From: Trichosphaerium sp. ATCC 40318
Lineage: Eukaryota; Protista; Tubulinea
Length of the DNA stretch: 64,000 nt
NCBI GenBank assembly: GCA_038496445.1
Contig: JALMLS010000414.1
Span: 124,001 to 188,000 of the forward strand
Reading direction: 5' to 3'
Below the pieces are notes generated by a model. It ran no database searches, was not told where the DNA came from, and worked only from the letters and a program-made list of their open reading frames with translations. Positions within the stretch are counted from its first letter, which is position 1, and the number at the start of each line of letters is the position of its first letter. The translations under genes were made by a program, and so were the position numbers. Shown piece by piece: positions 3,532 to 60,440 of the stretch.

Positions 3532-4321
3532 ATGTCAAATAAATCACAGCACTTTCACATACTACACCTTCCGATTGAGCTTCACCTCTACATCACTGAT
3601 TTTGATGTTGACACATACATAAAGTGGCCTTTATTGTCTAAACAAACAGCAACAACTTCAAGGTTTGATGAAGACATGAATAAACAGGGGAAATGGACAA
3701 GTTATACAGGTGCTAGTGATCAAATCAAAGATCAAAACAAGCGATCATCAAGAAGAAGATTATCGCAAGGGCATTGGATGAATGGTAAACTTCATGGAGA
3801 ATGTAGAAAGTGGTATGATACTGGTCAATTGGAGAGCCAGTTCTATTATGCAAATGGTATCCCTGTGGGAGAGTTCAAGGCATATTACAAGAATGGGCAG
3901 CTAGGTGAGCACCATAAATATGTTAACAGTGAGATAGAAGGAGAGTGGTGTATGTGGTATCGTAGCGGAGAATTAAGAGAGAAGCATCAAGTCGAAATAT
4001 TGGCATGAGAATGGACAACTTCAAAAGCAGCTTTTTTTTGTCAAAGGCAAAAAAGAAGGTGAGTGGAACGGTTGGAATGAAGACGGCCATATGACATACA
4101 AGTTTAACTATGTCAATGACGTGAATGAAGGACAACAGCTCATGTGGCATTCACAAAATCAACTATCCATGGAGTATTTTTGTGTCAATGGTAAAAAACA
4201 TGGAGTTAGTAAGTCATGGTATAAAAATGGTTTACTACATATTGAGACTAAATACGACAATGGCAAGAAAGTAGGAGAATCAAAAGTATGGGATCAAAAC
4301 GGTCAATTATCCTATATGTAG
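3532..4321 (+). pseudogene. F-box-like + MORN2 (YwqK-type) repeat gene, frameshifted near 3990
   Basis: N-terminus ILHLPIELHLYI..WPLLSKQ followed by 24-aa W-x-x-NGQL...NGK-x-EG repeats. One repeat lacks about 8 aa and the frame changes (..ELREKHQ / KSKYWHENGQL..). Confidence 0.8.
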
Positions 4322-56394: not shown

Positions 56395-57206
56395 ATGGCA
56401 TCACTAAACCCAAGAGATGACGAATACACTGGCATTAATATTTCAACGGATACAATTCTATACAAACGACAGAGAAGGCGTAAAATTGGTTATTGGATAG
56501 CTTTTGCTTTTACGACTACAGCTCTCGTATTTTCATTCTTCGCCATGATTGCGCCTTCCTGGCAGGTAGAAATAAAGTACATGTCTCAAAATCAGCTTTT
56601 CTTTTTTGGCAATCCCACGTGACAAATCACATGAGTTACAGTTTTTTTTTTTTAGAGGCTCCAGGCACTTTGGTTTACTGTGGGGATCGAGCAATAGCAC
56701 TTCGTTCGCGTTACCTACTGAAAAGAGGTTAGAAAGACAAAACGGCTTTTTTTTTCGCTTCGTTGATTCGTAAATAGGTCTGCAGGCGTCGTAGGCTTTA
56801 TTTTGTTTTTGATTGCATTCATATGGGGTATAATCGCTGCTGTATACTATATTTTAAAGGCTGTCAATAGGTACGTCAAAAGGTAATGGCTTAGTAACAT
56901 TGAAATGTATTAGGAAGAGTATCAATTTAAAATTTAAAGTTGCATTACTTCCGTGGATGCAAAAAATGCTGCTAGGAGCTATTACTACAAGTACAGTATT
57001 CTCTCTCGGTGGTATGATTGCTTGGGCTGGATTGGTAGGCTTCAATGGCTATAGATTTGGGTACACAACAGACAGCAACAGATAAAAAGATTGATTGTTC
57101 GTTTTTTAGATATTGTTTCTACTTTGAACTGTTGGCCATACTACTTTCCGTAGGCGCTGCAGTGATGATACTACTTCGGAAGAGAAAAACAATTTCATAC
57201 GTGTGA
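56395..57206 (+). CDS. Claudin/PMP22-like four-TM protein
   Basis: Four hydrophobic segments, P-S-W after TM1 and GYCFYF before TM4; four GT-AG introns. Confidence 0.65.
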
Positions 57207-57428
57207 CAATGCAGCGAACGAGCCAAGCTCAAATGTAGAGCAAGAACAAATAAACAAGTTGACAAAAAAAGTTTGATTTATTTCTCAGTTTTTTGAACAG
57301 AGTATTCTTTACAACTTCGCTCTTCGTCAGTTTCATTCTGCTGATTTACAGTGTAGTGCGCTGACCTGTAAAGTTATGAGTAAAAGAGCATAACAATAGT
57401 AAAATCAAACAAGATTTTTCGGTTTTAT

Positions 57429-57505
57429 GCGAATGTCAGTAATGGTTATTGTTTTCTCTCAAATAATTTCGGATGTCCCTACGCCATTAATTCTCATCAC
57501 GTCGC
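57429..57505 (-). ncRNA. Box C/D snoRNA, SNORD74/snR64-like
   Basis: gcgac-GTGATGA(C)...GGCGTAGGGACAT-CCGA(D')...CTGA(D)-cattcgc with a GCGA/TCGC terminal stem. The guide is antisense to the conserved LSU TGTCCCTA. Confidence 0.85.
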
Positions 57506-57678
57506 GTTTCGGAAGAAAAAAAAAAAACAGGAAACGTATTGGTGACTTACCAAAGAGTTTTGAAGCCTGTGTATCATGTCACCGATTGACCATTACGTCG
57601 TCTACTTGCTTTTTACCTTGATTGGGTCAGTTCCACTTCAAAGAGAAGAAAAGAAGAGAAATAAAGTTGAGTTTTTTT

Positions 57679-57749
57679 GTAGAATCATTAACGAAAGGTA
57701 AAATCACTAACAGTCATACGGTAACACCCGTTAACATAATCACTTCGAC
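57679..57749 (-). ncRNA. Box C/D snoRNA candidate, SNORD65/snR77-like D' guide
   Basis: gtcgaa-GTGATTA(C)..GGTGTTACCGT-ATGA(D')..GTGATT(C')..TTACCTTTCGTTA-ATGA(D)-ttctac with a terminal stem. The guides resemble antisense to SSU CGGTAA and AACGAAAG. Confidence 0.6.
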
Positions 57750-57924
57750 TTTGTAAAAGAAAAAAAAATCAAAAGGCAAATAAGAAGGCATATCGTACAT
57801 TAAGAGCAAGCAAATCACTGTAAAGGCATTCTAATCGATGCAGACAACGTCTGGGGTAACACTAGAGTAATCGTCAACAAGCTATACGACAGCATAGTTG
57901 CAAAAAAGTGAGAAAGTTTTTGAG

Positions 57925-58005
57925 AAAATCAGTAGTGTGCTTGTGAAGCGTTGTGAATCACGAAGTCCTCTTAAACACGGATCAAGTTAATTGGGCATCA
58001 TAAAA
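57925..58005 (-). ncRNA. Box C/D snoRNA, U18 (SNORD18)-like, copy 1
   Basis: ATGATGC(C)..CTTGATCCGTGTTT-AAGA(D')..GTGATT(C')..CTGA(D). The guide is antisense to the conserved LSU AAACACGGA(C/T)CAAG. Confidence 0.8.
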
Positions 58006-58252
58006 GACGGTTTCTTGCGCACATCAAACGCAAAGCGAAGGATGTACGGTCGGATGAACCAAAAATAATTTGAATCGATGCGATTTGACAGAAATAAGTA
58101 CCTTTGGTGTTATGACGTTGGCGTGAGTGCGCTTTTTAAGGCGTTCGTTTGTTTTTCTCGATACATTGACGGATTGTTATCTCATCGCGTCCTAGTTTGA
58201 TTATTAGATTGGTTTCTTGGGAAAATCGAAAGAACAAGGGTTTTTTTGCAAT

Positions 58253-58333
58253 AGAATCAGCGGGGTGCTTGTGAAGCGATGTGAATCACGAAGTCCTCTT
58301 AAACACGGATCAAGTTTGTTGGGCATCACTTTA
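58253..58333 (-). ncRNA. Box C/D snoRNA, U18-like, copy 2
   Basis: GTGATGC..CTTGATCCGTGTTT-AAGA..GTGATT..CTGA. Identity with copy 1 is confined to the span from box C to box D. Confidence 0.8.
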
Positions 58334-58711
58334 AAAGCAACAAACAGCGTTTTGGAAAGCAAGGAACGTACCATGTATTGTCTATGTACAAACGATAGTC
58401 GTAGACAGCAACTTTATAGTCAGTTGTGTTGTTGAAGGCATTTGATGTGGAATTTATGACAATTTCGACCCAAAAAAAACTTCGCAAAGAAAAAGAAGGG
58501 CGAAACTTGGGTGATTTTTTTTTATACTGCACTTGAAGCTATTAACTGCATTGGTGGTGAACGTAGAGTGTAAATTATGTCAAGTGTCAAAGACGCTCCA
58601 AATCGAAAAAAATTGACAATTTCATTATCTTATAAACAAAGCGGTGTCTAGAGGCTAGAACACCGGTTATGTAAACAAGGTTGACTCGTAACATTACTAA
58701 GTGTCAAAGTT

Positions 58712-60440
58712 ATGCAAGGTGGAGAAGACTACGACATACTTACCGCAAAATGGCCTGAGGACGATACAAGACGCGGTAAGCGCCTACTACGTGAGCTCAC
58801 TGCAGAACGCGCAATAGAAGAGGCACAGACTAAACTACAGTACGTAATTTATAGCGCCTTGGCATGTTTAAAAGGTGTTAACGCCGTCAGGGAAGAAAAG
58901 GATGCTCTCATCATCTGTGGCCATGAACCACCCGAAGAGAGCCCTAGTAACATAGCAAAAGCTTGTTTAGCTGCTAATGATAAAATTTTCGCTCGGAAGC
59001 GCGCTGAGAACCTATCCTTCACGCCGGTACGCATGTTAGAATACTGTAACATGCATAACACGCCCAGCAATGCGTTTTAATTATTCCAACTTGGAATTCC
59101 TTGCTATCGCATCACCAAGTGTCATAATCGCTACACCAGCTGCTTTCACCTATTTCCTACGTATCCGTTAAATTGTTTCAACTAATCTCCACACAAGGAC
59201 GAAAAAAAGGACGTCTACAACCGTGTAGCAAAATCGTGCCAATTTGGGGACCTTTGGGCTTGTTATCAAGAAGGTACGAATTCAGAAAAACATTTTTAGG
59301 ATAAACTTTGTGCATTTTGTATTTCCTTCTCTTGCCTCTAATTGACTCTATAGCCGCTATGAAAGTCGAAGGATATGGTACAGATAAGAATGCAGAGAAA
59401 GGTATGTCATACAGGGTGCCACAAAACGCCATTGCGCCTATGTTGTATCAGGAGTGTCTTCGCTTTTTGAATTTTAATAATGCGCCGTTTAACTTGCGTT
59501 AAGGTAAACAAAACCTCGGAGAGGCTTTGAAGAACGCATCAGACCTCTGTAATGAGTGTGATGATGCAGTAGCATGCAATCAGTTGGGTAAGTTCAGTCT
59601 TACAGTACGCCATGATCCAAAGGCGGCAGTAGCTCTATGGGATAAAGCGTGCACTTTGGGAGATGTAAGTTTTTTTATGTTGAATTCAATAGAAAACACG
59701 TTTTAACCATGTGATTGTATACTCACAGCGTATAGTCAGAAGCATGCCATAATGTAGGCGTTCATTATTACAATATAAAGAAAATTGGGTTAGTTTTCAC
59801 TTACAAGAAATAAAAGTAATGTTTTTCTGCTTAGGTTTGAAGATTACTTCGAAAAAGGATGTGACCAAGGTAACATTACTAGCTGCGCGTACTTGGCACA
59901 TCACAAAATGTACGTCAATATCCGCTGTTACTATTTTTCTCCTGGTGACTGAGACCACTCTTTTACTTTTTGCGTAGAAATCTGGATCTCTCGTCAGCGT
60001 TAAAACTTGCTGTAAAAGCATGTGATAGTGGTCATTGCGAAGGTGATGATCCTACTTTTGATCTTAATTTCTGGCTCTCAGAGATGTACCAAAGGAACCA
60101 ACGTGTTGATTTAAAACATTTACTCATACATTGGCGAAATTTTAATGAAGCAACAAAATACGCATGGTTGTCATGTCAAAATTGCAAATTTTCTCAAGGT
60201 AAGAAAACACAACCAACACCAACAAGTATTCTCGCCAATAGTACTAATTTCTTCCCAAAAGGATGCCTGAAAATGGGTTTTTGGTACGACAAAGGCCTCG
60301 CTGGTTTGAATAAGAGTAAAGAACAAGCAGAACGATTTTATAGAGAAGGATGTCAACTAGGTAACCTAGAGGCATGCGTGCATCTTGGATACGTGTCTGA
60401 AGGTAGAGTAACACCAGATATTGTTGACTTTATGGTCTGA
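58712..60440 (+). CDS. Sel1-like (Cys-rich Hcp/COA7-type) repeat protein, multi-exon
   Basis: KSCQFGDLWACY, LWDKACTLGD/SEACHNVG, YFEKGCDQ and FYREGCQLGNLEACVHLG. Confidence 0.75.

Follow-up and report, generated by a model that had tools for sequence, protein, structure and literature searches.

A predicted non-coding host gene with four intronic box C/D snoRNAs in the protist Trichosphaerium

Introduction

Spliced host genes that yield small nucleolar RNAs (snoRNAs) from their introns and no evident protein from their exons have been described in both animals and fungi. Vertebrate GAS5 and UHG (SNHG1), and dUHG of Drosophila, have multiple exons without a meaningful open reading frame (ORF), and each of their introns holds a single box C/D snoRNA tens of nucleotides upstream of the acceptor. 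The UHG-like clusters I–V of Neurospora crassa are likewise compact non-coding hosts with short ORFs and one C/D snoRNA per short intron (PMC2780460). A keyword search of the literature, which was not a review, found no such host reported for Amoebozoa or other amoeboid protists. Here, we analysed a window of 64,000 nucleotides (nt) from Trichosphaerium sp. ATCC 40318 (contig JALMLS010000414.1, positions 124,001 to 188,000; all positions below count from the first letter of the window) and describe a minus-strand locus in an intergenic gap that would share these features. We read this locus, with moderate confidence, as a GAS5/UHG-style non-coding host gene with four intronic snoRNAs, its transcription as one unit and its splicing being predicted from the DNA itself.

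Results

Four box C/D units carry guides for the organism's own rRNA

Four box C/D units, designated A to D, were found on the minus strand of 57262–58526, all inside the interval in which an earlier sequence-only reading of the window had placed four such units. Their positions, and that of the gap in which they lie, are as follows.

Inter-gene gap: bounded by two plus-strand genes, one with its end at 57206 and the other with its start at 58712
58328-58257, minus strand: snoRNA A, with C box TGATGC (58328-58323), guide (58314-58301), D' box AAGA (58300-58297), C' box TGATTC (58288-58283) and D box CTGA (58260-58257)
58000-57929, minus strand: snoRNA B, with C box TGATGC (58000-57995), guide (57986-57973), D' box AAGA (57972-57969), C' box (57960-57955) and D box CTGA (57932-57929)
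57742-57685, minus strand: snoRNA C, with C box TGATTA (57742-57737), guide (57729-57718), D' box ATGA (57717-57714), C' box TGATTT (57706-57701) and D box ATGA (57688-57685)
57499-57436, minus strand: snoRNA D, with C box TGATGA (57499-57494), guide (57486-57474), D' box CCGA (57472-57469), C' box TTGAGA (57462-57457) and D box CTGA (57439-57436)

From C box to D box the units measure 72 nt (A and B), 64 nt (D) and 58 nt (C), within the 50–130 nt expected of box C/D snoRNAs, for which the consensus boxes are RUGAUGA and CUGA, and no C/D box pairs at snoRNA spacing were found on the plus strand of the gap. Targets were searched as duplexes with the organism's own ribosomal DNA (rDNA) on contig C481, on which the ribosomal RNA (rRNA) coordinates run from the Rfam-defined starts of the small-subunit rRNA (SSU, base 320) and the large-subunit rRNA (LSU, base 3571). 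Every unit proved to carry a guide of 12–14 bp, above the minimum of 10 nt for the class. The guide stops at a D'-like box or one base short of it, the box being AAGA for A and B, ATGA for C and CCGA for D. The common guide of A and B forms a perfect 14-bp duplex with LSU 815-828, that of C a 12-bp duplex (11 Watson-Crick pairs and one G-U pair) with SSU 867-878 in the 530 loop, and that of D a 13-bp duplex (12 Watson-Crick pairs and one G-U pair) with LSU 2711-2723. By the fifth-nucleotide rule, the predicted methylation targets are LSU A819 for A and B, SSU U871 for C and LSU C2714 for D. When 500 shuffled guides per unit were scored in the same way as the real one, the score was reached by none of the 500 for A/B, by 15 for C (3%) and by 6 for D (1.2%). 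The claim that the gap holds four minus-strand C/D units was borne out, and their guides do pair with the organism's own rRNA.

That these box and guide matches arose by chance and mark no functional RNA is a very improbable alternative. It can draw on the sub-threshold Rfam scores given below, and on a loose scan for a C box, a D box and an anchored guide, which was run over the whole window with reversed-sequence controls and yields 7–10 false matches per 64-kb strand. This rate, however, corresponds to ~0.17 matches expected in 1.28 kb, where four were observed, and all four units fall on conserved methylation sites in the correct fifth-nucleotide register. The guides also track changes specific to this lineage: its rRNA departs from the eukaryotic consensus at eight duplex positions (one in the duplex of A and B, three in that of C and four in that of D), and all eight lineage-specific bases are paired by the guides, seven in Watson-Crick pairs and one in a G-U pair. 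Moreover, conservation between A and B is confined to the functional unit. Over exactly 74 nt, a stretch that runs from the C box to a little beyond the D box, the two share 92% identity, and no alignment of the flanks is possible; the six differences all avoid the boxes and the 14-nt guide, an arrangement with a chance of ~0.02 by our arithmetic. A and B are paralogs. We consider A and B very probably genuine snoRNAs, and C and D likely so, at a slightly lower level of confidence.

The 3' guide region of A and B contains CGCTTCACAAGCAC, of which 13 of 14 bases and the preceding base are common to both units; no credible target was found for it in the rRNA, to which the search was confined.

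The predicted targets are conserved methylation sites

Alignment of the rRNA segments to the Rfam rRNA models placed the targets at LSU 661 (GAAAC-A-CGG), LSU 2343 (UGU-C-CCUA) and SSU 580 (GCGG-U-AA), and these model positions lie within a few nucleotides of the Arabidopsis and yeast numbering. The exact match to yeast rRNA numbering is in part presumed: yeast G577 corresponds to E. coli G530, which helped to map the target of C to yeast U578, LSU A819 is presumably yeast Am649, and LSU C2714 is presumably yeast Cm2337. A published table gives all three sites as common to Arabidopsis, human and yeast (PMC3511168, Table 1). In LSU domain II, the guide of A and B is directed to the A of GAAAC-A-CGG, which is Arabidopsis Am660, human Am1313 and yeast Am647, the site of U18; the guide of D is directed to the first C of the LSU motif UGUCCCUA, which is Arabidopsis Cm2327 and human Cm3820, the site of SNORD74, snR64 and AtsnoR44 (PMC3511168, Table 1). 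The uridine of the 530 loop, to which the guide of C is directed, is mapped from model position 580 and the same table to Arabidopsis Um580, human Um627 and yeast Um578, the site of AtsnoR77Y, HBII-135 and snR77 (PMC3511168, Table 1). Each unit would thereby be a 2'-O-methylation guide for an rRNA site conserved across eukaryotes, methylation itself being predicted from the pairing.

No part of the window matched Rfam at gathering thresholds. The Rfam model closest to unit B was snoU18 (22.2 bits, E 1.7), in a full-length alignment in which guide and D' box line up, and the gathering score of 47 for U18 (RF00093 / RF01159) was not reached. For unit D, SNORD74 was the sole match (13.2 bits, E 1.2, gathering score 41), with GUAGGGACAUC in common and guide and D' box aligned base for base; D does carry a SNORD74-type guide. 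Unit C matched no Rfam model, SNORD65 / snR77 included, at E up to 10. Because all scores stay under the gathering thresholds, the guides are best described as putative functional equivalents of U18, SNORD74/snR64 and snR77/SNORD65, not as sequence-level members of these Rfam families. The boxes of C are unusual in a matched manner: its C box UGAUUA is met by a D box AUGA, so that the G6-C1 pair of the k-turn becomes U-A, and the C'/D' boxes of A, B and C are likewise U-A.

The guide-plus-D' strings have no further copy in the 70-Mb genome; one-mismatch guide matches on contigs C19 and C24 were rejected, as they have no boxes. Since these strings are unique, A–D appear to be the sole guides for the three sites in the genome. 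A DNA search for paralogs of the locus elsewhere in the genome returned the locus alone, and a metagenome scan for relatives gave three chance matches, all of them without C boxes.

Splice signals set one unit into each predicted intron

The host gene predicted around the four units comprises the following elements, listed in the direction of transcription.

58515-58526, minus strand: putative promoter, TATA-like element TATAAAAAAAAA, read from the sequence, with a presumed promoter function
58372-58500, minus strand: predicted exon 1, with an approximate start in the pyrimidine run CCCTTCTTTTTCTTT (58500-58486) and a 19-codon ATG ORF only
58192-58371, minus strand: predicted intron 1, 180 nt, with donor GTACGT, branch-like CTAAT (58207-58203) and acceptor TAG; a second possible acceptor, AAG, has its end at 58216
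58102-58191, minus strand: predicted exon 2, 90 nt, with stop codons in each of the three frames
57882-58101, minus strand: predicted intron 2, 220 nt, with donor GTACTT and acceptor TAG
57799-57881, minus strand: predicted exon 3, 83 nt, with stop codons in each of the three frames
57636-57798, minus strand: predicted intron 3, 163 nt, with donor GTACGA and acceptor AAG after a long pyrimidine tract
57551-57635, minus strand: predicted exon 4, 85 nt, a form in which each frame has stop codons; 19 nt if donor GTAAAA at 57616 is used
57366-57550, minus strand: predicted intron 4, 185 nt, with donor GTAAGT, branch-like CTCAT (57380-57376) and acceptor CAG
57255-57365, minus strand: predicted last exon, with AATAAA (57282-57277) and an approximate end

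The splice grammar of the organism was read from its own genes. The 70-Mb assembly is eukaryotic and its introns are short, the gaps separating exon matches in four HSP70 paralogs being mostly 38–90 nt. Donors are typically GTACG, with a GTAC start in 13 of the 19 read from true introns, and acceptors are T-rich tracts that end in TAG, CAG or AAG, often with CTNAY upstream. In the gap, GTA[CA][GT][TA], a donor-like motif, is present at four minus-strand positions (58371, 58101, 57798 and 57550) and absent from the plus strand, and three of the four predicted donors start with GTAC. Each motif lies 43–101 nt upstream of one unit, a one-per-interval arrangement to which we assign a chance probability of ~0.016. 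Downstream of each unit, at 47–70 nt, a T-rich tract ends in TAG, AAG or CAG (58192, 57882, 57636 and 57366), and a CTNAY motif stands 10–37 nt ahead of every predicted acceptor. The predicted introns are three to four times the usual length; in size, each corresponds to an ordinary intron of the organism with one snoRNA added. In base composition, the flanks of the predicted introns (41% T, 12.5% G) are close to true introns (47% T, 13% G), and the predicted exons (27% T) to true exons (26% T).

In plant, trypanosome and yeast clusters, snoRNAs are cut from a precursor by RNase III-type and exonuclease processing. An unlikely, though not negligible, alternative to the spliced host is accordingly that the four units are real snoRNAs which splicing does not release, made either from an unspliced polycistronic precursor or from separate promoters and processed in that way. 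T-runs before the C boxes and A-runs after the D boxes could pair as external processing stems, but minimum free energy (MFE) folding shows such pairing for unit C only. The number of donor-like motifs, which equals the chance expectation, would suit an unspliced precursor; yet exactly one organism-typical donor precedes each unit and a pyrimidine tract with YAG follows it, and intron-like and exon-like composition alternates in register with the predicted splice sites. Separate promoters find no counterpart in the sequence ahead of the units, where no repeated promoter elements are recognisable. In favour of this alternative, polycistronic snoRNA clusters predominate in several lineages of protists and plants (PMC2780460).

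The protein-coding capacity of the spliced host was assessed by local ORF counting in four alternative models of the joined exons. No ATG ORF longer than 25 codons was found in any of the four models, and exons 2, 3 and 4 are stopped in all three frames. A host that codes for protein, with mis-modelled exons and the snoRNAs in its introns or untranslated region, is improbable on these counts. The exon boundaries are predicted, two alternative acceptor/donor choices exist, and micro-ORFs of 19–25 codons are present, all of which leave such a host some room; against it, the unspliced ORFs of 56 and 68 amino acids have no Pfam match, and the plus-strand genes on both flanks leave no space for further minus-strand coding exons. 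Two further statements of the sequence-only reading, that splice signals separate the units and that the short exons do not join into an ORF, accordingly agree with the organism's donor/acceptor grammar, with the compositional split of introns from exons and with the ORF counts.

The TATA-like element lies 26 nt upstream of the 15-nt pyrimidine run. The run recalls ribosomal-protein leaders and the 5' terminal oligopyrimidine (5'TOP) habit of vertebrate snoRNA hosts, a likeness that is suggestive only. In the genes for L15e and S8e, the two ribosomal-protein genes checked, the leader contains a pyrimidine run of 12–14 nt in both. In these two genes (L15e on contig C10 and S8e on contig C61), the first exon is ATGG alone and is followed by an intron.

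Several observations weigh against a spliced host of four snoRNAs. The donor-like motifs are no more frequent than chance (~3.3 per kb), and their arrangement alone is unusual. Acceptor-like sites (a T-run with AAG) stand directly upstream of A and C, and it is possible that short introns ending there leave those snoRNAs exonic. As to the units themselves, the Rfam scores fall far below the gathering thresholds (22 versus 47 and 13 versus 41 bits, with none for C), and no credible rRNA target was found for the D-box (3') guides of A–D, a borderline match of the 3' guide of A not being kept in B. Terminal stems amount to at most 3–4 bp in C and D and are very weak in A and B, where there is almost none; MFE folding of the units with their flanks was no better than that of shuffles and is uninformative.

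Other elements in the gap and its surroundings

Other candidates in and near the gap were considered and set aside. A fifth unit at 57345-57290 was rejected, having neither an acceptable C box nor an anchored guide. In the upstream part of intron 2, TGATGT at 58026 with an overlapping 13-nt SSU match was likewise rejected, as the match is anchored to no box. Exon 2 (58191-58102) was rejected as a fifth snoRNA, lacking a D box and terminal pairing. Its C-like box CGATGA is followed by 11 bp that are complementary to SSU 1576-1586, in the GCAUUGACGGA region, and these by TCGA; the score of this SSU match is reached by 3.6% of shuffles. Exon 2 may be a decayed fifth C/D unit that now serves as an exon.

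A C/D look-alike on the plus strand at 57157-57215 overlaps the stop codon of the membrane-protein-like neighbour, has no rRNA guide and was also rejected. It reads CTGCA-GTGATGA...GTGA..TGCAG, with a 5-bp terminal stem and weak Rfam matches to sn2841, SNORD29 and SNORD58, and is probably due to chance. On the minus strand, a two-hairpin element at 58562-58681 lies in the putative divergent promoter, between the TATA run of the predicted host and the ATG of the Sel1-like gene. It has an 11-bp palindromic stem (CGGTGT.CTAG...CTAGACACCG) and an Rfam match to ceN93 (24 bits, E 0.22); its fold z-score is -2.55, and 4 of 200 shuffles fold as well. It may represent an H/ACA-like RNA or, alternatively, a palindromic element of the promoter.

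The neighbour on the side of the predicted last exon is the following.

57204-57206, plus strand: stop codon of a membrane-protein-like gene, on which the predicted host transcript converges

The gene starting at 58712 on the plus strand had been called a Sel1-repeat gene, from which the host would be transcribed divergently. The Sel1 signal is present, but its Pfam matches are weak, at 27 bits under a cut-off of 30.7, so that only the signal, and not a match above the cut-off, stands.

The rRNA of this organism is very divergent, its SSU spanning ~2.65 kb and its 530 loop reading GCACCCGCGGUAACACCCACUCC where the consensus is GCAGCCGCGGUAAUUCCAGCUCC. Two LSU copies stand tail to tail on contig C481, and many copies of the SSU are found no more than a few kb from the end of a contig. 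Because the LSU copies are tail to tail and SSU copies lie near contig ends, this layout suggests palindromic or subtelomeric rDNA.

Discussion

The reading that we favour is a minus-strand RNA polymerase II gene of ~1.25 kb, divergent from the Sel1-like gene and without a protein product. Its introns, of 163–220 nt, would each hold one box C/D snoRNA, which begins 43–101 nt past the donor and ends 47–70 nt ahead of the acceptor. Splicing would free the introns, and debranching followed by exonuclease trimming would halt at the small nucleolar ribonucleoprotein assembled on the C/D boxes. The 5' (D') guide of each snoRNA would then direct fibrillarin-type 2'-O-methylation, and the spliced exons, ~490 nt in all, would be a non-coding by-product.

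The rRNA of this organism is highly divergent, and the locus is predicted to hold the sole genomic guides for its methylation at three deeply conserved sites; the locus offers a clean example of guides that change along with their targets. If splicing is confirmed, the GAS5/UHG-type non-coding host would extend beyond animals and fungi, which bears on the question of whether the layout is an ancestral trait or one that readily emerges where introns and snoRNAs occur together. In terms of annotation, the locus indicates that seemingly empty intergenic gaps of this genome can contain essential RNA genes. A wider and more doubtful proposal, which we put forward only tentatively, is that this protist lineage produces snoRNAs in a systematic manner from non-coding hosts that have a single snoRNA in each intron and a pyrimidine-rich start like that of ribosomal-protein genes. 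If this were true, the UHG/GAS5 architecture would be far older than the opisthokonts or would have evolved repeatedly, and the same would perhaps hold for growth-linked co-regulation with ribosomal-protein genes.

Beyond the predicted common layout, the locus and GAS5 have a SNORD74-type guide in their cargo, and a pyrimidine run at the predicted start recalls the 5'TOP hosts. Compared with GAS5/UHG, the setting here is a protist with very divergent rRNA, the predicted introns measure 163–220 nt, the four snoRNAs include two paralogs, and the exons have no sequence similarity. The Neurospora hosts, too, have alternative splice sites, as predicted here, and in one Neurospora cluster a snoRNA is encoded by an exon (PMC2780460), a situation reminiscent of the possible C-box/guide relic in exon 2. 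The Neurospora lineage is unrelated and its snoRNA set is another one, and its hosts were confirmed by reverse transcription PCR (PMC2780460), whereas splicing is here predicted from the sequence.

Among the individual snoRNAs, A and B are closest to U18 (SNORD18 / snR18 / AtU18; RF00093, RF01159), with the same guide GAUCCGUGUUU followed by a D' box, the same target adenosine and a length of ~72 nt; U18 of vertebrates and yeast is intron-encoded, as predicted for A and B. The known U18 hosts are RPL4 or EFB1, whereas the predicted host here is non-coding. In contrast to U18, the D' box is AAGA instead of AUGA, and one guide base has changed along with the rRNA, an A opposite U replacing a G opposite C. 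Unit D corresponds to SNORD74 / snR64 / AtsnoR44 (Rfam clan CL00069), with the same guide core GUAGGGACAU adjoining the D' box and the same target, the first C of UGUCCC in LSU domain IV; it differs from SNORD74 in its D' box, CCGA, and in the 5' part of the guide, which is rewritten to follow the lineage-specific rRNA. Unit C has the same predicted target as snR77 / SNORD65 (HBII-135) / AtsnoR77Y, the U that follows GCGG in the 530 loop of the SSU; compared with snR77, it has no detectable sequence similarity and carries the variant boxes UGAUUA and AUGA, and half of its guide differs because the rRNA differs.

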